A stretch of 64,000 bases of DNA from Trichosphaerium sp. ATCC 40318 (taxonomy: Eukaryota > Protista > Tubulinea). The DNA lies in assembly GCA_038496445.1 (NCBI GenBank), contig JALMLS010000204.1, positions 248,001-312,000 of the forward strand, given 5' to 3'. Shown here in pieces: positions 8,987 to 55,363 of the stretch; position 1 is the stretch's first letter; every line of letters begins with the position of its first letter. The position numbers and the translations under genes are program-made. The notes beneath the pieces were generated by a model that was given only the letters and a program-made list of their open reading frames with translations, did not search any database and had not been told where the DNA came from.

Positions 8987-10432
8987 TTAGCGAGCGGCAA
9001 AACTGCGCATGGGTTGCTCACTGAAAGGAACAATGGGAATGGTACGCGGGTTGAAGTGTTCATCAATGAAATCAAAAGTGTTCAATTGTACTGGCAGCTG
9101 AGGCATTTTACCCTTACCAGGAGGTTGTAGGTCGTCTAGCCTTTACGAAAAAGTGAGTTGAGGGTTGATTTGATTGACATTTAATGCCCTTACCCGCGTA
9201 GCAGAAAGTAAACATTATCACGAAACTGAACCATTAAATCAATATTGTCAATATACTGTCCTTGAGCAAGATTTTTTTTCATAGAGCTCATCAACTACGC
9301 GCCACTGTAAGAAAAAAAAAAAAATAGACGATTTCGTCAGAAAGAAAAAAAAGCTCCAAAAGCTCTGTTCTACGTACCTTTATATTATCTTCAATCAAAC
9401 GTTGTGTTCTTGGGTCCAAGTCAGGTATATTTTGGTGTGGTGGTACTACTGGTGGTTGTAAATGTGCAGGAGGTGCAGAGTGAGGCATTTGTGGCTTTGT
9501 TTCACGTGTATTTGGAGGGTAAGTCTCGCTCATAGGGAAAGCGGGCGTATAATTTGTTATAGGTGCATTTTTTGGCTTTGTTTGAGGTGATGTTTCCTTC
9601 TTGACCTATAAAGAGTATCATATTAACAACAAGTCCGAACAAAAATCAAATAAAGGAAAGTAAGAAAGAACCAAAAACAAGAAAAAAATTAAATCAAAAA
9701 ACTAGTTTAAATGCGTTTTTGAGTTTTAGGTAAATACTCTTACCTTTTTTGATTTTGCAATAGCTGCTGCTTTTTGCCTTGATGATTTACGTTTTCTTGT
9801 CTGTTTTGGTGGGTGCTAGTACGAATGATGAGTATTTACGGAAGGTACTCGTGAGTAGTTTTTGTACTTGTTTTGGTTGGTAGCTCGTCTTGTGTATAAG
9901 ATTGCGTGTTGCAGTTGGTGGTGGTGGCGTAATATTCATTGTGTCGCCGTGATGGCTGCCAGAGTTTCGTAAAGTGTCTTCTTCCATTGAGTCGTGGCTG
10001 CTTGTTAAACACATAGAACTACTCTGCATCAAGTCCCCTGTCGTTTGGGCACTGTGACGAACTAATGCGTTCGTAACAGGTACAGGCAAATGCTCTGGAG
10101 GCCAGCCCATGCCTAGAAGATGTAAACAACGATTTTGCGAGAAATCAAAACACAGCGTTTTAACATACTAATATCACCCATGTCGCCTAAAGTGTCTCCA
10201 GTGTCCATCCAGTTCTACTAGGTGTCAATATTAACCGGTAAAAGAGCGGTTGCGTAAAAGGCAAAAAAGTAGTGTAGGAGTATGTAAAATGTTTATACTT
10301 AAACGTACACCGTTTATTTCCATGGGAGGTTTCGTATCCATAGCGCTGCGATGTGTAAGAAAAAAAAAAAACAAGTTGGCCTTTTTGTTATTTTACTTAC
10401 CTGGGAGCATTAAAACCATCACCTTCTTTCAT
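8987..10432 (-). CDS. Low-complexity protein with C-terminal DUF3755-like helical motif (multi-exon)
   Basis: C-terminal exons read LIEDNIK..NLAQGQYIDNIDLMVQFRDNVYFLLRGLDDL...KMPQLPVQLN, resembling the plant DUF3755 motif (NINLF..RDNI..IL..MPPLPV.LN). The start codon is tentative. Confidence 0.55.
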
Positions 10433-45797: not shown

Positions 45798-46782
45798 ATG
45801 ACAAACCTAACAGACAAGAGTTTTGGTGTAGAATCTGATGAAAGACATCTATTACGCCTTCCAGTTGAGATTCTACTCAATATCATGGATTTAGACGCAT
45901 CAACATATTTAATTTGGCCGCTTCTTTCGAAACAGGCGGCAATGATGACAAGGTTTGATGGTGACTTGAAAAAACATGGAAAATGGCAACAAACGGCCGA
46001 CAACTACAGAATTGTACGTGAGTATTTGTGCCGAAAATAATGTTCGAAGCCCGAAAGCGGCAAATCTTTTTCAACAATGTGTTTAATCTTATATTAGACT
46101 GAGCATTGGTCGCATGGTGAGCAACACGGAGAATACAAGAAGTGGTACAGAAACGGCCAATTGGAGCGGCAGTGCAATTATGTGAATGGTAAACAAGAAG
46201 GAGAGTACAAGCGTTGGCATGAACATGGCGTTTTATGGGAGCAGTGCAGTTATGTTAATGGTTTACTAGAAGGAGAGTTCAAGAAGTGGCATCAAAATGG
46301 CCAATTGGAGCAGCAATGCAATTATGTGAATGGTAAACAAGAAGGAGAGTACAAACAGTGGTTCGATAATGGCGATTTGTACGTGCAGAGCAGTTATGTG
46401 AATGGTTTACTAGAAGGAGAGTTCAAGCGGTGGCATTATAAAGGCCCTTTGCAGTGCCAGTGTAGCTACATCAAAGGTAAAAAAGAAGGAGAGCAAGGAG
46501 TGGTGGCATGGCAATGGCCAATTGATGTGGCACTCTTATTATGTCAATGGTGAGTATGAAGGAGAGGATAAGCGGTGGCATCGCAATGGGCAATTGCTGT
46601 GGCAGTGTAACTATATTAATGGTAAAAAAGAAGGAGAGTATAAACAGTGGCATGACAATGGTCAACTGAAGAGGCACTGCAATTATGTCAATGATAAACG
46701 AGAAGGAGAGTATAAACAGTGGCATGACAATGGCCAATTGAAGAAGCACTGCAATTTTCACAATGACAAAGAGTGCGAATGA
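45798..46782 (+). CDS. F-box-like + MORN-variant repeat gene with one candidate intron (46014-46097) and a +1 frameshift near 46497
   Basis: N-terminus nearly identical to the 14884 copy (LPVEILLNIMDLDASTYLIWPLLSKQAAMMTRFD..KHGKWQ). About 9 MORN-variant repeats with recent 144-nt and 72-nt internal duplications. Confidence 0.78.
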
Positions 46783-47112: not shown

Positions 47113-49372
47113 TTAACTTGAAATTTCAATTGGGAGTGTATGTAAACAAATACCAAAGAAGTGGTTGATAGTGCCACCTGAAAGAAAAAATCGTCAGAAA
47201 AGAAAAGAAAAAAAAACCATGATAAAGTTTCGTACCAAGTACAAATAAATGCCACAATACATGATAACGTGGTATCTAAAAAAAAAGCCCAGTGAGCACA
47301 GAAAATCAAGTAAATAGTATCATACCTTGTTGCCAAGAATATAGAAAGGTACACCAATAGTGTAGCATAGACCTCCGGCTAATAGCCAATATACCATCTA
47401 AACAACAAATAAATATGTTGGTTTTTTCTAAAAAGAAAATGTCTCGAGAAAAAAAAAAAAGAACTTACATCCATTGACACATAGTCATGTACGTTTTCTA
47501 TCATTATTAATGGACCTGCAGCCCATCCCATTGCTAGAAATTAATAATAAGTTATTTAAAATATACAATGAGCTTAGTAATACCAAGCATGAGTGTTAGT
47601 TTTGCTGCCTTTAAATTTTTCCTGTCGCTGATAGCATCGATGCAAATGCCAATGAAAGCACAAACCCACTCGAATACAAGGACAGCAGGCATCCATTTAA
47701 ATTTATTGCAATTAATTAGCAGTACTGGTGTGTATGTACCTTTAAAGAAAAGTTATTTAAACGTATATTAAAGAGAAAGGACAAGGGTTCGAAAGAGAAT
47801 ATCACGTGCCAGCAATTAAGAAGTAAATTGCGCAATGGTCAAGTTTTTGGAATAAATATCTGGTTCTACCAAGAGTAACGAAACTATGGAATAAGCATGA
47901 TGCCATGTATACACTCAACTAGTTTAAACATTAGTATATTAGTGCACAATATATTAATAGGTTAATGAAATCTAACGTACCATACTGAATCCATAAATCA
48001 ATGCAGCTGCCAAATGCCATGGCGACTTATTGTAGCACTGACTTAGCAAGTACACTAAAGCACAAACAGCGAACAAAATACCAAAACCTGCGAAAAAAGA
48101 ATGTAAGAAAATCATCCGCACGTGACAAAATTTGAAAAAAAAAAAATGTGATACGGTTGACCTTAGTAGGCCGTTGAAACAGTTTCTCCGAAAGCAAGGG
48201 TTGCTAACGGATTGTAGTTGGATTTTTTTGAAAATGTTTTTAGGATGGCGTACCATGGGTTATTGCGTTGAGTATCTCTTCCGCAAGTGAGTTTTTATCA
48301 GTTTCAATTTCAATCTGATGAGGTTCATCTAATGTTCTACGTCTTGTTTCATTACACTTGAGGCAAGCTATACGTAGCTTTGATACCTCACTGTAAGGTA
48401 TCAAATTATTCGTTACATCAAAAAATCTCAAATCGTGGTTTCCTTTCTACGATATCCGTCAGCTTTCTTTAGACTTTGGAGAAACAAAAACAACAATATA
48501 AAAAAAACCAACTGTCTCAACCTTACTAACACCACAACATGCAGTTCAAGGCGCTTTTTTGTGGTTGAAATTCTCAAGATTATTCTTAACGTACCGTTAT
48601 AGCTGTCACGAAAGCAATAGCTCCTTTCGATAGTCTAAAGGTCATACATAAGTTAATAGATATAGAAACGAGGATAGAAGGGAAGTACTTACAGTTTGTT
48701 GCCATGCAAATTTAGAATTTGTAGAGTAGTGTTTGTAAGTAGACTATTAGCCAGAGCACGAGCGCCACGTGGTCCTACACCAGACTCTTGAAGATTAAGC
48801 TTCTTTATATGCTTATCATGCTCCAATACTTTTGCGAGTATGATTACACCGTTAGAGTTTATTTTACTTCGAGAGAAGTCTAGGGAGTCAAAGTATACTG
48901 CCTCTTCAGTGTTATCGACTACTCAACGTCAACAAAAAACGAAACGAAAAAATTCGAAAAAAAAAAAACGTTTTTTGTCTTTCGGTTCCTTCTGTTTAGA
49001 AACTTCGTACCAATATTAGGATCAGTCGGTTTATGCTCATAGTGGAAGTTAGGGGCATTATGGTCCAACATAATCAATTCTGCTAACGCTGCACTAACTA
49101 AATGTGAGAATACGCTAAAAATTAATAGTCGCGTTGTCTTTTTGTGTTACCATTCGTTCTCTGTGTACGGGTGTCCAGGCTACAATTTCAGTGGGTAAAG
49201 ACGATTCGACAGATTAACGAACCTTAAAGTGCGATCTACGCGTCTTCAACGCCATTATTACAGCGGAGTCTGGTTGTATTTGGTATTTCTTTGCCATAGC
49301 CAAGTAAAATTGCTCTTTTTGCATAACAGTAAGCGTACGCTTCGCTAATACGCGCTTTGTTGCCTTTGACAT
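47113..49372 (-). CDS. RI-like LRR domain fused to a hemolysin III/PAQR 7TM membrane protein (multi-exon)
   Basis: LRR exons ([57 protein letters not shown]) splice into one exon running [11 protein letters not shown]...[10 protein letters not shown]. HlyIII motifs follow: [40 protein letters not shown]. Confidence 0.82.
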
Positions 49373-49561
49373 ATTGTCACTCAAGTCTACAAGTCAGTGC
49401 GTTGGGAAACCGCAAACTACCGAAATTGACTTTTATTTATATCCGTCTGAAAAGACATGCTTATCACTTTTATTTGTTGTCTAAAACAACAGGAAATGGA
49501 TGAGTTTTTTTTTATTTGAAATTATTTTAATTTACATTTTTTTTTGTTGAAATTTCTCCGT

Positions 49562-50838
49562 TCATTTTCTTGTCAATAATATGTTATCAATAAGTCGGGT
49601 TGAACCAAGCTTAATGGCAGCAGAGAAAACAGCGCCAGCTTCTCCAATATTCTCAACTTCAATACCTTAAGAATATGGTGTCAATGCATACACAGGGAGA
49701 GTAAAACTGTTAAAAAGAAAAGACAAAAATACAATACCATCGTCTAGATCAGCAATGCTAAAGTAATCTATAACAGCCTCTGGCAAAGTATGCTTCAAAT
49801 GATTCGTTGCGCTATTAATAGTTAGAATGAAACAAGAATTATTCTTTAGTCTCACGTGTCACAGAGTGTTTTGGCATCAAGTACACCATTCTTGTCAAAT
49901 TGAATATTCGCTTTTTGTAAGGCTTCATACAGAGCTGGTGCCTAATTCTGCTTTAGATACCTGACAGTCTTCCCAAAGAATAACGTACTCTCTTTCTATC
50001 TTCTTTGGATAAGTAAGAGTTTCTAGAGCTCATGGCAAGTCCGTCACTTTCTCTAGTTGTTGGTACAACAACAACATCAACAGGTACATTTAAATCCCTC
50101 ATTAATTTTCTAATTGTTAGGTGAGTACGTTAATAACACTGCAATATTTCTCCCTACCTTATAGTAATACATTGTATGGCATCCTTCTGGCCAAAGTAAA
50201 TCTTGTCCGGTTGCACAATATTGTTCAGTTTTGTTACAATGGTTGCTACACCCTTGAAGAAATCAGGGCGTGATTTTGCTTCTCTTGTTTGCTCTACGCA
50301 TATCAGTACCCAACCTCTTCCCCTCTTCTCACTTACCAATGGTCTCAACGTTGACGTATGTAGAGAATCCAGGAGGATAGATTTCTTGTTTTGTTGGTAG
50401 AAAGACAGCGTCTACATTCTCCTTCTCGAGAAGAGACAAATCATTTTTTGTGTTTCTATTTTTTTTTTAAGTTAACGCTAATCACGTGTACTCTGACAGA
50501 TAATTGATTCCGTACTGTGGGTAAGTATCTAAGTCTTCATGGGCCGCAAACTGGGCTGGGTTGATGAAAATGCTAGCAACTACAAATTCAGTCTCTAGGC
50601 GTCAAAAGTTAGTGTTACGCTATGGTTAGCGCATATAACGATAAATAGCGTGTTAACGTTGGTTTGGCTGACACTTTTAAGTAAAACTGCTGAACGTACC
50701 TTCTCTGGCTTTTCTGACTAATGATAGATGCCCTTCATGCAAATAACCCATCGTTGGTACTAAACCAACGGTTTTATTTGCTTTTCTTGTTTCAGCGCGT
50801 ACGCGAGCATACGCAGATACAGACTTTGCTACTTGCAT
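49562..50838 (-). CDS. panC: Pantoate--beta-alanine ligase (pantothenate synthetase; multi-exon)
   Basis: [18 protein letters not shown] (HIGH-type motif), [57 protein letters not shown] and TRLIDNI. Confidence 0.95.
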
Positions 50839-51240
50839 ACTTAAAAAGTTAAAAATTCAGCCAAACAGTAATTTTTTTGTGTAAGAGTCTCGCTTGGTCT
50901 CCTATGCTTGTGTAGTCGAGTACTCTAGCTTCCACCGGTTTCTACGCTTGTGTTTACTGGATAAGCGGCGTTTTATTGTCTTATACGCACGTACGCTCTG
51001 TTTTGATCCGGAATTTCTATTTTTGAATAGTAGACTATTTTTCTGAGCTCTTGAGTTCGCTGAAACTATTTTAACGCGTGTTCATTGCAGTCCAACATAT
51101 TCTAAGACAAAACAAGCAAACAAAGCTTTAAACGCCCACTTCTTACATTAAAAAAGGTTCTGGACCATCTCGCAGTGGTATATTAACATCTCCCACAAGC
51201 CTTCAACTTTTCTCCTCTTTTTCAAAACAACTTCAAAAAA
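50839..51240. promoter_or_regulatory. Putative bidirectional promoter between panC and panB-panE
   Basis: 402-bp non-coding interval between divergent ATGs. Contains the direct repeat CTA(T/C)GCTTGTGT at about 50902 and 50942, plus CTCGCTTGGT at 50889. Confidence 0.55.
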
Positions 51241-54164
51241 ATGTTACAATCCACAAGATTTTACACCGCTTGTCGGCAATCAATACAAATACGTGACAGA
51301 TGTCATCGTGCAACAACCCGTAAATACTCAAAGCCCGTTACAACATCAAAAACATCATTACTTGATTGGAAGCGAAAGTATGAGCAAAAGGCACCAATCA
51401 CAATGGTGACAGCGTATGATTATACTAGCGCAATGCTAGTAGACAAGGCAGACATAGACGGGTACCTTTTTTTTTTTCATTTTATTTTTTTTTTTGATCA
51501 AAAAAGTTTTTCCGGTTTAAAGTTTACCCATCTTTAGAATTCTTGTTGGTGATTCTCTTGGTATGGTTATGCAAGGCGAGAGTGATACTACCGCTGTAAC
51601 TGTAGATGGTACGTATTTTTTACATGAACATTACCAATAACAATTTTAACGGAAGACGTTCTGTGAACAGTTTCAGTTGAAAAAAACAAACTAAAGTTTT
51701 TGTGTTTAACCTTTTTTTACTAGATATCATTCATCATTGTAAAGCTGTATCAAAGGGTTCTAAGAAAAAATTTCTTGTCGGTGACATGCCTTTTGGAAGC
51801 TATGAAGCATCGCCAGAAGATGGTAAGAATTTTCTTTTGACATTCTTCAAACAGTCAAATGACACGTGATGTTTGATTTAGTAAGTAACTTTTCTGTTAG
51901 CTGTTCGAACAGCTGTTCGTATAATGAAAGAAGGACAAGTTGATTCAGTAAAAGCAGAAGGAGGAAAGCGCATAGCAGCGAACATTAAAGCTATTACAAA
52001 TGCTGGAATACCAGTAATGGGTCATATCGGTTTGACACCACAAACAGCCAGCAATTTAGGTGGATTCAAAGTCCAGGGTACTGATAACTGCGTTAAGCAC
52101 TGTGCTTATTTTTCATAGGACGTACTGCTGAAGGAGCACTTGAACTCGTAGAAGATGCTTTAGCTCTTCAAGAAGCGGGATGTTACGCACTTGTCATTGA
52201 AAGTGTACCACGTAAGATAGGAGAATTTATTACGTCCAAGCTGAAGATTCCTACAATTGGCATTGGCGCAGGTAAGCTTATTATCAGTAAACTAGATATT
52301 AACGGAGTTAATCACGTGTAGGTAATTCTACTAGCGGACAAATATTAGTGTGGCATGATATGTTTGGCGTGTACGATGACATGAGTCCAAAGTTTTCAAA
52401 AAAGTTTGCGAACGTTGGAGAAATAATTTCACAAGGATTGTCTCAATACAATACAGAAGTTTCCTCTAGACAGTTCCCAGCTAAAGAACATTCTTATATG
52501 ATGAAACAAGAAGAATGGAATAAGTTTAAGACATGGTTCAATATAGATAAGCAACAAGTAACTCCAGTATTAAAAGCTGAATCGGCAGTAAAAACGAAAA
52601 AAGAAGCGACGTCAGGAGAATCAGTTGCAGTACCAAATATTCAGATAAATGCTAAGAAGCTTAAAATTGCTATTGTTGGTGCTGGTAAGTTCAACGAGGT
52701 TAACTCCTGTCTCTAAACTGTTTTAAAAAACAGGAGCAATGGGTAGCCTTTTTGCAGGTCATTTGGCAAAAGTTAAAGACGCCAATGGCGAAAAACCTGA
52801 GGTACACATGCTGCACGTGTTTCTTATTATTTTCTTAACACTTGGTTTTTTATTTGTTTTCCTTCTTTGTTTAATGTACCACAAAGTCTGTTATCCAGGC
52901 AGTGGATTTTTTACTTTTATTTTCTCTCATTCGGTAAAAACAATTATGGAAAAATTATTAATTTTATGGATAGATTTGGCTAGTATCTTCATGGCGCGAT
53001 CATATTGATAAAATAAATCATGGCGGTTTAACACTAGAGACAGTAGATACTTCTTATAATACTTTTGATAATATAAAAGCAACACACAATCCAGAGGAAG
53101 TTTTAAAAACTGGTCCGGCAGATTACTCGATGGTTATGGTACAAGAACGATAAGTTGTTTGGAGTCTATACTAACTTATTCCTAAGGTAAAATCTCCGTA
53201 CACTGAAAGTGCAGCACAATGCGCTGCAACTGTATTAGGAGATAATAAGAAAGGTCACATCATTACACTACAAAACGGAATGGGTAATCGCGAGATAATA
53301 ACTGACATTTTACAAGATGAGAATCGTGTTATTCAAGGGACTACAAGTCATGTATGTCATTGTATTGTTTTTATCCCAATCTAACAGTATTATTATTAGG
53401 CTGCTATGATAGTTGAGCCGGGATGTGTGAGGCACACTGGTATTGGTGACACGTATCTTGCTTCAAACAAATATAATGAAAAAGAAGTACAATTACTTAG
53501 TGATATGTTTAGTAGTACTGGTATTGATTCACAGGTTCGTCAATCACACGTGATATTTGTCGTTTATTTACAAAAAATTAACATTACGATTAAGGTTCAA
53601 AAGGATCTGGATTCTCTTTTATGGGGAAAACTCATTATAAATGCCGGCATTAACCCTCTAACCGCAATCTTTGGCCTAAAAAATGGAGACTTGACTGGTT
53701 CAGAGAAACGATTGGATCTTCTTACAAAGACTGTTGGCGAAGCTGCTAATGTAGCATATGCTAACAATATAAAAGTAATTATTTCTAATCATTTTCCATT
53801 GAGTTAACGTATTTTTTTTATAGTTACCTTTTGATAATCCACTCCAAAAAGTTTTGGAAGTATTAAGAAATACAGCGCCTAATCAATCCTCAATGTTAGC
53901 TGATATTCTACGTGGAGTAACAACTGGTACGTTACAGTGTATTAGATTAATAGTTTAGTGCTATAGCAACTCCAGAAAATGAAGCTGACTTACTTTTTTT
54001 CCTTAGAAATCAAACACATTAATGGCGTTATTGTGAAAGAAGGAGATCGCCTTGGTCAACCTGTAGATATCAATAGATTACTTGTTGGCATATTATCAGA
54101 CTTTAAAGGTTCTAGGCCAAAGGATTTACCTAATATGTTAGCTGCAAGGTTGATGGCTTTATAG
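51241..54164 (+). CDS. panB: Bifunctional ketopantoate hydroxymethyltransferase / ketopantoate reductase (PanB-PanE fusion) with mitochondrial presequence-like N-terminus (multi-exon)
   Basis: PanB: [69 protein letters not shown]. One exon (ORF 52348..52716) runs without a stop from the PanB C-terminus through a linker into PanE KIAIVGAG|AMG. PanE motifs: [34 protein letters not shown]. Confidence 0.93.
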
Positions 54165-55363
54165 AAGAAAGTGTTTATGAATTATCATTTTTGTACATAC
54201 AGTAATTTTACGCACTCTTCGAACTACAAACAATAAAAATACTTGCCTATGACTCTTGTATATCGACAATATCAATTACATTTACCGTCACTGTTTGATA
54301 GTGTACAGTGACAAATGTTGATTTCTTGTGACGTACAAAGAATGTTGATAGGCCAGCCATTGTAATTACATTGAGCGTACAGTAGGCTACTCATAAAAAA
54401 GAGCCATCACGGGTAAACTTCAACAGATTACTTCCCGTTGCAGCTTTTGCTGACTCTCTTCATCCGAACAGGGTGAACAAAGAAAAGGGTTTCAAAGCCC
54501 TTTCAAACATAATTTATTTCATATGAAACGGGTTTTAGGTTTTGTTGAGGTACATAATGTAGGGTATTCTAGAATCTTAGTGTTGTACTCATAAACAATA
54601 CGTGTTCAAAATCCAGGACGATTTTTTGTCGGCTTTTAGGGCTAAAGTCGGAGCCTTCCAACTTGCGACATAGAGGCAAAACTACATGTCGTGGGACAAG
54701 TACAACTGTAAGCGCTTTCGCTACCAGTAGAAATCACGTGTAGAGGTTCTCAAACAGGTTACAACAAATCCGTTCTGACTAGGATAGTCACGCAAAACAG
54801 CAGTTAACTGGATGTAAGGGTAAAAAACAGCTTAGCGCTAGTTTACCAGGTACTACAGGATGTGCACTCTTTTTTCCAAAGCAGACATTCACATAAACAC
54901 ATGAAGTGCGTTCGTTTTCTGCATCGGCCGCAACTTTGTGTTACGCTACTAGTTTCTGTTTCGCTCTGATTCAAAGTACATAAACCCAATATATCCACAC
55001 AAAGATCCATGAGAACCATTGACTTTTAAAGTTATGCACTTTTTCACTAATGACTCCAGAAAAAGCCAAAACTATGCCAATGTTCTTTGTAAGGCGTTCT
55101 ATACACATTGGGTACGTATCGGCTCTAATGGGTGTTGGCTGCCGAAAGTGGTTTGCGGGCATCTTTTTCTCCAACACTCTCCCTTTTTTTCTTACTTTTT
55201 TTTTTCATCTTATTTGGTTCTAGGAGCATTATTTGGTACCTCTGTTCGAATTCTATTGTCTAACTATGCTGGTACCAGAGTGCCCGCAAAATGCGGCCAG
55301 AGTTTTGTGCACGTGACTTTATCAATTTTATCTATTGCCAAAAACACCAAAAGCATACTAAAC

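Follow-up and report, generated by a model that had tools for sequence, protein, structure and literature searches.

Organization of the pan locus

The window analysed here, a stretch of 64 kilobases (kb) of genomic DNA from Trichosphaerium sp. ATCC 40318, harbours two neighbouring genes for the synthesis of pantothenate (vitamin B5), which are arranged head-to-head: panC on the minus strand and, on the plus strand, a fusion of panB and panE, hereafter referred to as panBE. All positions refer to the window unless a contig is named. Gene models were built by joining short open reading frames (ORFs) at GT-AG sites, and exon pieces or database proteins served as queries in the homology searches. 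In these models, panC runs from an ATG at 50838 to a stop at 49562 and contains seven GT-AG introns of 43-105 nucleotides (nt), the second of which begins at 50515 on the minus strand. The panBE gene starts with an ATG at 51241, stops at 54164 and has 12 coding-region GT-AG introns of 41-172 nt. A preliminary description of this DNA had proposed that both genes diverge from a spacer of 402 base pairs (bp), and the gene models confirm this layout:

49562..50838, minus strand: panC coding region (pantoate-beta-alanine ligase); hand-built model, 8 exons, 285 amino acids (aa)
50838-50700, 50594-50516, 50455-50337, 50293-50158, 50109-49989, 49941-49856, 49811-49738, 49665-49562, minus strand: panC exons
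51241..54164, plus strand: panBE fusion coding region; hand-built model, 13 coding exons, 685 aa
51241-51461, 51538-51608, 51724-51822, 51901-52077, 52119-52271, 52322-52684, 52734-52801, plus strand: panBE exons 1-7
52974-53138, 53187-53351, 53400-53534, 53595-53774, 53824-53926, 54007-54164, plus strand: panBE exons 8-13
50839..51240, no strand: ATG-to-ATG spacer, 402 bp, candidate bidirectional promoter region; includes the panBE 5' untranslated region (5'UTR)

The pan region is fragmented into short ORFs, and its base composition (35-40% G+C) equals that of the remaining window. The 64 kb contain no second copy of a pan gene, and a tblastn search of the window with Escherichia coli PanD as query gave no panD-like match, in agreement with the preliminary description.

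Domains and conserved residues of PanBE and PanC

Full domain matches and intact residues uphold the earlier proposal that the two genes encode the three consecutive steps leading from ketoisovalerate to pantothenate. Exon pieces from the first part of panBE cover positions 3-258 of Pantoate_transf (PF02548) in order (best piece, E = 6e-22), and the exons that follow match ApbA (E = 2e-8) and then ApbA_C (E = 5e-11), in each case on single exons. Likewise, the panC exons are collinear with positions 2-267 of Pantoate_ligase (PF02569). Identity to the E. coli K-12 proteins (NC_000913.3) amounts to 45% for PanB, 28% for PanE and 41% for PanC. The fusion protein is composed of the following parts:

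51241..51345, plus strand: N-terminal extension, ~35 aa, probable mitochondrial presequence; not in E. coli PanB
51346..52482, plus strand: PanB (ketopantoate hydroxymethyltransferase) domain, ~aa 36-294, with introns; PF02548 match
52483..52659, plus strand: inter-domain linker, ~aa 295-353, within exon 6; no Pfam match
52660..54161, plus strand: PanE (ketopantoate reductase) domain, ApbA plus ApbA_C, ~aa 354-685, with introns; PF02558 and PF08546

Exon 6 of panBE (52322-52684) is a single open frame: 53 residues complete PanB, ~58 residues form the linker, and PanE then begins with its GxGxxG motif. Thus, the fusion is real and not an artefact of the model. The linker is weakly conserved among PanB-PanE fusions, and an ESM Atlas search with exon 6 returned generic PanB fragments only.

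The residues compared were those which we take, from the structures of the E. coli and Mycobacterium tuberculosis enzymes, to be catalytic or ligand-binding. PanB keeps D45, S46, D84, K112, E114, H136 and E181 (E. coli numbering). PanE retains GxGxxG together with residues equivalent to E. coli K72, N98, K176, E210, N241, S244 and E256. According to the alignment, the glycines of this motif correspond to G360, G362 and G365 of the fusion, and E. coli PanE residues K176, E256 and N98 to K551, E634 and N469, respectively. In PanC, residues M30, H34, H37, Q61, D152, Q155 and S187-S188-R189 are conserved, and the protein carries the HxGH and SSRN motifs, the latter as S185-S186-R187-N188. Judged by these alignments, all checked catalytic residues of PanB, PanE and PanC are intact, and PanBE is predicted to be bifunctional with both activities residing in one polypeptide. 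The assignment of its second domain as a ketopantoate reductase, as opposed to another reductase of the ApbA family with a different substrate specificity, is likewise predicted.

The N-terminal extension of PanBE comprises 8 K+R, 1 D+E and 10 S+T in 36 residues. Such a basic and hydroxylated composition is typical of presequences and makes a mitochondrial location of PanBE likely. PanC has no N-terminal extension, and we consider PanBE as probably mitochondrial and PanC as probably cytosolic. The same distribution has been reported for Toxoplasma gondii, where the corresponding fusion (KPHMT-KPR) is mitochondrial and the last step is cytosolic (PMC8717973).

Expression, splicing and the intergenic spacer

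Contigs of public runs (X1, X2 and X3) were mapped onto 49400-54400. X1 and X3 contigs lack precisely the sequences modelled as panC intron 7 and panBE introns 4, 8 and 10, which indicates that they represent spliced RNA from the same organism or a near strain (eight substitutions). Loose contig ends agree with panBE introns 5 and 11. Altogether, seven introns are confirmed by spliced public contigs, and an intron in the 5'UTR comes in addition. Moreover, an unbroken expressed contig spans 52459-52685 (X1 record 4), showing that the linker is transcribed together with the PanB and PanE parts. Hence, the earlier view that these are intron-rich eukaryotic genes and not bacterial contamination was correct, and the genes are expressed. 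The transcripts also delimit the 5' end of panBE, and the spacer contains a short repeat:

50942..50990, plus strand: panBE 5'UTR exon, minimum extent; 49 nt upstream of the joint in X1 record 2
50991..51156, plus strand: panBE 5'UTR intron, 166 nt, GT-AG; X1 contig joins 50990 to 51157
50902-50913 and 50942-50953, plus strand: 12-nt direct repeat CTAYGCTTGTGT in the spacer, two copies, candidate promoter element

The distance from the panC ATG (50838) to the first mapped transcribed sequence of panBE (at least 50942) is ~100 bp. Thus, the promoters of the two genes probably overlap or are one, and panC and panBE most likely share a bidirectional promoter. From this arrangement, we infer that the two genes are co-regulated. 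The 5' end of the spliced contig falls at the second CTAYGCTTGTGT copy. A role of this repeat as a general promoter motif was rejected, as it is not enriched elsewhere in the window.

Several further observations concern the non-coding parts of the locus. In many of the short introns of panC and panBE, TTAAC lies 15-35 nt ahead of the acceptor, frequently extended to GTTAAC or TTAACG; this element is probably the branch-site consensus of the organism. The palindrome CACGTG is present 53 times in the window versus ~7.5 expected, and TCACGTGT 18 times versus 1.75 expected. Six copies fall into the pan locus, every one inside panC or panBE introns; the window spacer contains zero copies and the corresponding spacer of a Vermamoeba-like amoeba (see below) two (contig L175 at 8929 and 8948). 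Finally, an X2 contig that is 100% identical to the window retains panC introns but lacks 40 nt (49917-49956) that, read on the plus strand, are bounded by GT..AG; either a deletion allele or a spliced antisense transcript covering the 3' half of panC could account for it. In another X2 contig (53902-54400 region), panBE intron 12 is retained.

The head-to-head pair is conserved in a Vermamoeba-like amoeba

Linkage of the pan genes in other eukaryotes was surveyed by searching the genomic surroundings of fusion genes with the window PanC. The head-to-head arrangement of panC and panBE was also found on two Vermamoeba-like genomic contigs, L175 (324 kb) and L176 (112 kb), which are 97% identical to each other in the pan region. 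Both belong to the 90%-identity cluster around the best-scoring relative of the window, in which the transcript protein of Vermamoeba vermiformis (EP00029) is joined by exon-sized ORFs from long genomic contigs. Here, panC exons occupy 8822 to 7526 of the minus strand, panBE begins at 9112 on the plus strand, and a spacer of 289 bp lies between them. Protein identity to the window is 50.6% for PanBE and 52% for PanC. Introns with the same codon position and phase as in the window account for four of the five in Vermamoeba-like panC and for one of the five in panBE. When both loci were compared by tblastx, collinear similarity extended across the two pan genes only, and no match was obtained between their flanks. 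The common arrangement and introns, in combination with scrambled flanks and proteins that are ~51-52% identical, indicate that the pair is orthologous and old. Thus, it is probably inherited rather than accidental, which substantiates the earlier claim that the adjacency of the two genes exceeds chance. In the comparison across relatives for which the preliminary description had called, the linkage of the two genes is kept in the Vermamoeba-like amoeba and is missing in most other eukaryotes sampled.

A tandem arrangement, with panC immediately preceding panBE on one strand, occurs in two related compact metagenomic picoeukaryotes (L003; L171-173). They have a G+C content of 67% and 55%, and the proteins are 69% (PanC) and 76% (PanBE) identical between them. 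As an additional feature, arginine-pathway genes are found within a few kb of the tandem (L003 13113-16677; L171 1-2690), the neighbours being ArgJ, a gene that combines AA_kinase with NAT, and an ArgC-ArgD-like fusion of Semialdhyde_dh and Aminotran_3. The contig carrying the closest stand-alone PanC (P0282 on L170) includes just 341 bp upstream of panC, which is less than the 402-bp spacer of the window. Full-text literature searches returned no description of a conserved divergent panC/panBE pair in amoebae, and this pair appears to be what is new.

The PanB-PanE fusion is widespread in eukaryotes

The fusion itself is already known and is not special to this protist. Coccidians such as Toxoplasma encode a bifunctional KPHMT-KPR protein, and Perkinsus has the same fusion (PMC8717973; also PMC8764084). 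In Chromera and Vitrella, a trifunctional ORF additionally includes PanC (PMC8717973). In our searches, PanB-PanE fusions were detected in many Amoebozoa, that is in all dictyostelids sampled, Planoprotostelium, Protostelium, Cavostelium, Arcella, Echinamoeba, Rhizamoeba, Vermamoeba, Balamuthia and Mastigamoeba (annotated as 'putative fused'). Beyond Amoebozoa, they are present in Thecamonas (apusomonads), Fabomonas (ancyromonads), Parvularia and Diplonema. Trifunctional PanB-PanE-PanC proteins are found in the choanoflagellates Salpingoeca rosetta and S. infusionum, in the green alga Chloroparvula japonica and in environmental eukaryotes, and the amoebozoan Stenamoeba has a fragment consisting of ApbA_C plus PanC. 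The nearest database proteins are 63% (PanB) and 50% (PanE) identical to the window, so that a near relative of this organism is missing from the collection searched.

A few unusual cases were encountered along the way. A compact eukaryote (L178 4656-6722) encodes a PanB-PanC fusion of 688 aa without a PanE domain; its PanE is either encoded elsewhere or replaced. A PanB-PanE fusion from the oribatid mite Oppia nitens (record P0180, 892-kb contig) is placed beside dictyostelids in the PanE tree, with a support of 99 in the SH-like approximate likelihood-ratio test (SH-aLRT), which could be due to horizontal transfer from a social amoeba or to contamination. In the PanB tree, PanB of the rotifer Rotaria groups with protostelid sequences.

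Bacterial relatives of the pan genes

A profile of the eukaryotic PanE domain was used to scan metagenome contigs and one genome per prokaryotic species, and gene order was counted in the best 80 named prokaryotic genomes. Chloroflexota, mostly Anaerolineae, account for 65 of the 80 best prokaryotic PanE matches. In 67 of the 80 loci, panE is immediately preceded by panB on the same strand, and 21 of those continue with panC; of 66 junctions checked, 65 have separate ORFs. Prokaryotic loci on metagenome contigs follow the same gene-order pattern as the named genomes. Searches scored by hidden Markov models also rank Chloroflexota proteins top for PanB and PanC. One PanC homologue search was carried out with P0282 as query; the window PanC is 50-55% identical to Chloroflexota PanC, level with other eukaryotic PanCs. 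Also among the 80 best prokaryotic PanE matches are two Asgard metagenome-assembled genomes, L146 and L149 (Freyarchaeota, Jordarchaeia), whose PanE sequences cluster in the tree with Thermodesulfobacteriota and Clostridia and not with eukaryotes.

Trees of PanB, PanE and PanC were computed by quick maximum-likelihood searches with prokaryotes picked by similarity and E. coli as the sole distant outgroup. In all three trees, prokaryotes and eukaryotes fall on opposite sides of one branch. The window domains group with Amoebozoa in the PanB and PanE trees with moderate support, from which the organism would be amoebozoan-like and probably a member of Tubulinea. The window PanC, its Vermamoeba-like counterpart and three stand-alone PanCs are placed together in the PanC tree (SH-aLRT 97), and this group is nested in a eukaryotic group of 20 sequences (support 99) that includes the PanC domains of trifunctional proteins. 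According to a 2026 preprint, Chloroflexota are sister to the eukaryotic clades of certain cofactor pathways, pantothenate metabolism among them (10.64898/2026.05.08.723234). Together, the operon order, the trees and the preprint suggest that the whole pathway has an old bacterial-type origin, probably a single one, and argue against a recent transfer into this protist. Acquisition by horizontal gene transfer (HGT) in this very lineage, as contemplated earlier, is contradicted by the position of each domain within a eukaryote-wide group and by the introns common to Vermamoeba. As regards the common bacterial donor for which separate domain phylogenies were to be examined, Chloroflexota are the closest sampled prokaryotes for all three domains; with sampling by similarity, a single distant outgroup and quick searches, this is no claim of a donor.

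Surroundings of the pan locus

The ORFs that flank the pan pair gave no usable Pfam match, and no additional pathway gene was recognised adjoining the pair. Gene density is high around the 3' side of panC: an apparent next gene on the minus strand (49214-49384) starts ~180 bp past the panC stop, and its first ORF is without Pfam match. An ORF with MORN-like repeats (YVNGxxEGEYKxW units) is located at 46161-46553, 3 kb from the pan locus.

Explanations for the pan locus

Taken as a whole, the data are in our view best explained, with a probability of roughly 60%, by an expressed, amoebozoan-like pan locus, in which an inherited gene pair likely shares a promoter and includes an older, operon-derived fusion. 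According to this model, the bifunctional PanB-PanE protein would generate ketopantoate and then pantoate, probably in the mitochondrion, and a separate, probably cytosolic PanC would ligate pantoate to beta-alanine. The shared bidirectional promoter could adjust expression of panC and panBE to the same vitamin B5 demand. The head-to-head pair would date back at least to the ancestor that this organism shares with Vermamoeba and would have outlasted the surrounding synteny. The fusion would be older than the pair and most likely descend from a panB-panE-panC operon of the Chloroflexota kind, which may have been taken up early in eukaryote history. We infer this operon origin for the fusion, whose PanB-PanE(-PanC) order equals that of panB-panE-panC in Chloroflexota. 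Thus, the earlier idea of an operon relic holds for the fusion. The order of the head-to-head pair differs from that in the operon.

Several observations weigh against this model. The head-to-head form is known in two organisms only, and no panC was detected within 8-10 kb of the fusion in Cavenderia, Balamuthia, Planoprotostelium, Dictyostelium discoideum (two assemblies), a Diplonema-like contig and Thecamonas, indicating that linkage is dispensable. The spacers of the window and the Vermamoeba-like locus yielded no alignment above shuffled controls and no common motif of at least 9 nt. CTAYGCTTGTGT is absent from the remainder of the window, and a repeat unique to the locus may be due to chance. 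As to the trees, quick searches, biased prokaryotic sampling and a single outgroup mean that Chloroflexota are to be read as closest sampled and not as the donor. The lack of linkage in at least six other fusion-bearing eukaryotes and the lack of common sequence in the two spacers would also fit a neutral adjacency, in which the pair has simply not yet been separated in two amoebae and has neither shared regulation nor selective value; by our estimate, one chance adjacency of same-pathway genes per genome may not be very unlikely. However, the pair is the sole collinear segment relative to the Vermamoeba-like contig at ~51% protein identity, a second lineage, the picoeukaryotes, keeps panC and panBE adjoining across two species, and fusions of the same genes (PanB-PanE, PanB-PanE-PanC and PanB-PanC) recur. 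We therefore regard neutral adjacency as unlikely, while taking it seriously.

It is also conceivable that a single inversion broke up an ancestral trifunctional PanB-PanE-PanC gene and placed the old promoter between the resulting parts, in which case the linkage would be a direct heritage of the fused operon. Trifunctional proteins do exist in Salpingoeca, Chloroparvula and environmental eukaryotes, as does the ApbA_C-plus-PanC fragment in Stenamoeba, the PanC domains of the trifunctional proteins and the window PanC fall into one group with a support of 99, and inversion of the promoter together with the PanB-PanE part would produce exactly the observed geometry. Yet intermediate forms were not found, the stand-alone PanCs of Amoebozoa make up a clade by themselves rather than branching within trifunctional amoebozoan sequences, and the tandem order of the picoeukaryotes, panC and then panBE, is unattainable in this way and needs another route. 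This leaves a split by inversion quite improbable. A broader scenario, which strikes us as rather improbable, would derive the eukaryotic pan genes from one Chloroflexota-type operon whose linkage was never fully lost, the amoeba pair having arisen by one inversion of a trifunctional gene and being held together by a promoter that both halves had come to share. Linkage would then survive in the form of PanB-PanE and PanB-PanE-PanC fusions, the picoeukaryote tandem and the tubulinean head-to-head pair. We practically dismiss the possibilities that a bacterial pan operon was recently acquired by HGT or that the locus reflects bacterial contamination or faulty assembly. The high identity of the window PanC to Chloroflexota PanC (50-55%), which matches that to eukaryotic PanCs, might suggest recent transfer. 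However, there are 20 spliceosomal introns, several of which are confirmed by spliced contigs and some of which are common to Vermamoeba, the base composition of the pan genes is that of the window, all three domains belong to eukaryote groups, and the same arrangement is present in independent assemblies. Classification of the locus as a bacterial operon or a recent HGT island was rejected because the genes lie on opposite strands, contain 20 introns and are placed in eukaryote groups.

To our knowledge, conserved primary-metabolism gene clusters are rare outside fungi, and almost none is documented in amoebae. The pan locus represents a small case of this type: two genes cover a whole vitamin pathway, their arrangement has persisted between deeply diverged organisms, and the spacer from which they are transcribed outwards is short enough for dissection. 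It may therefore be a candidate system to study how operon-derived genes remain linked in eukaryotes. The fusion, hitherto studied as a drug-target peculiarity of coccidians, gains a wider frame that includes many eukaryotic supergroups and a bacterial operon order. The practical gain is modest and consists in better annotation, since most database entries name PanB only.

Comparison with known systems

In yeast, same-pathway genes form pairs or clusters such as GAL1-GAL10 and the DAL cluster, some of which have shared divergent promoters. GAL1-GAL10 resembles the pan pair of the window in that adjoining genes of one pathway form a divergent pair, which in yeast is driven from a single intergenic region. 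What differs from GAL1-GAL10 and the DAL cluster is that the window concerns a vitamin pathway in an amoeba and that its shared regulation is putative. The operons of Chloroflexota (Anaerolineae and relatives) contain the same three genes and provide the closest sampled prokaryotic sequences for each domain of the window, and their gene order panB, panE, panC is also the domain order of the eukaryotic PanB-PanE and PanB-PanE-PanC fusions. In Chloroflexota, however, the genes are separate, intron-less ORFs on one strand and polycistronic, whereas in the window panC lies upstream of the fusion on the opposite strand.

Among eukaryotes, the KPHMT-KPR enzymes of T. gondii and other coccidians and of Perkinsus marinus have the same domains in the same order in one polypeptide, while PanC (PBAL) is encoded by a separate gene (PMC8717973; PMC8764084). 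The T. gondii enzyme also carries an N-terminal extension, as does PanBE of the window. In contrast, the host of the window genes is amoebozoan-like, and PanC of the window is compact with 285 aa, while T. gondii PBAL has a mass of 88 kDa (PMC8717973; PMC8764084). Moreover, panC and the fusion are head-to-head in the window, whereas the apicomplexan papers are silent on gene adjacency (PMC8717973; PMC8764084). The PanB-ApbA-ApbA_C architecture of the window is likewise found in the 3-methyl-2-oxobutanoate hydroxymethyltransferase of D. discoideum AX4 (833 aa), in Cavenderia XP_004361098 and in Mastigamoeba, and these annotated amoebozoan fusions are 55-63% identical to the window in PanB and 37-50% in PanE. 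Finally, the trifunctional proteins of Chromera, Vitrella, Salpingoeca and Chloroparvula unite PanB, PanE and PanC in one polypeptide, whereas the window distributes the same activities over two genes on opposite strands.

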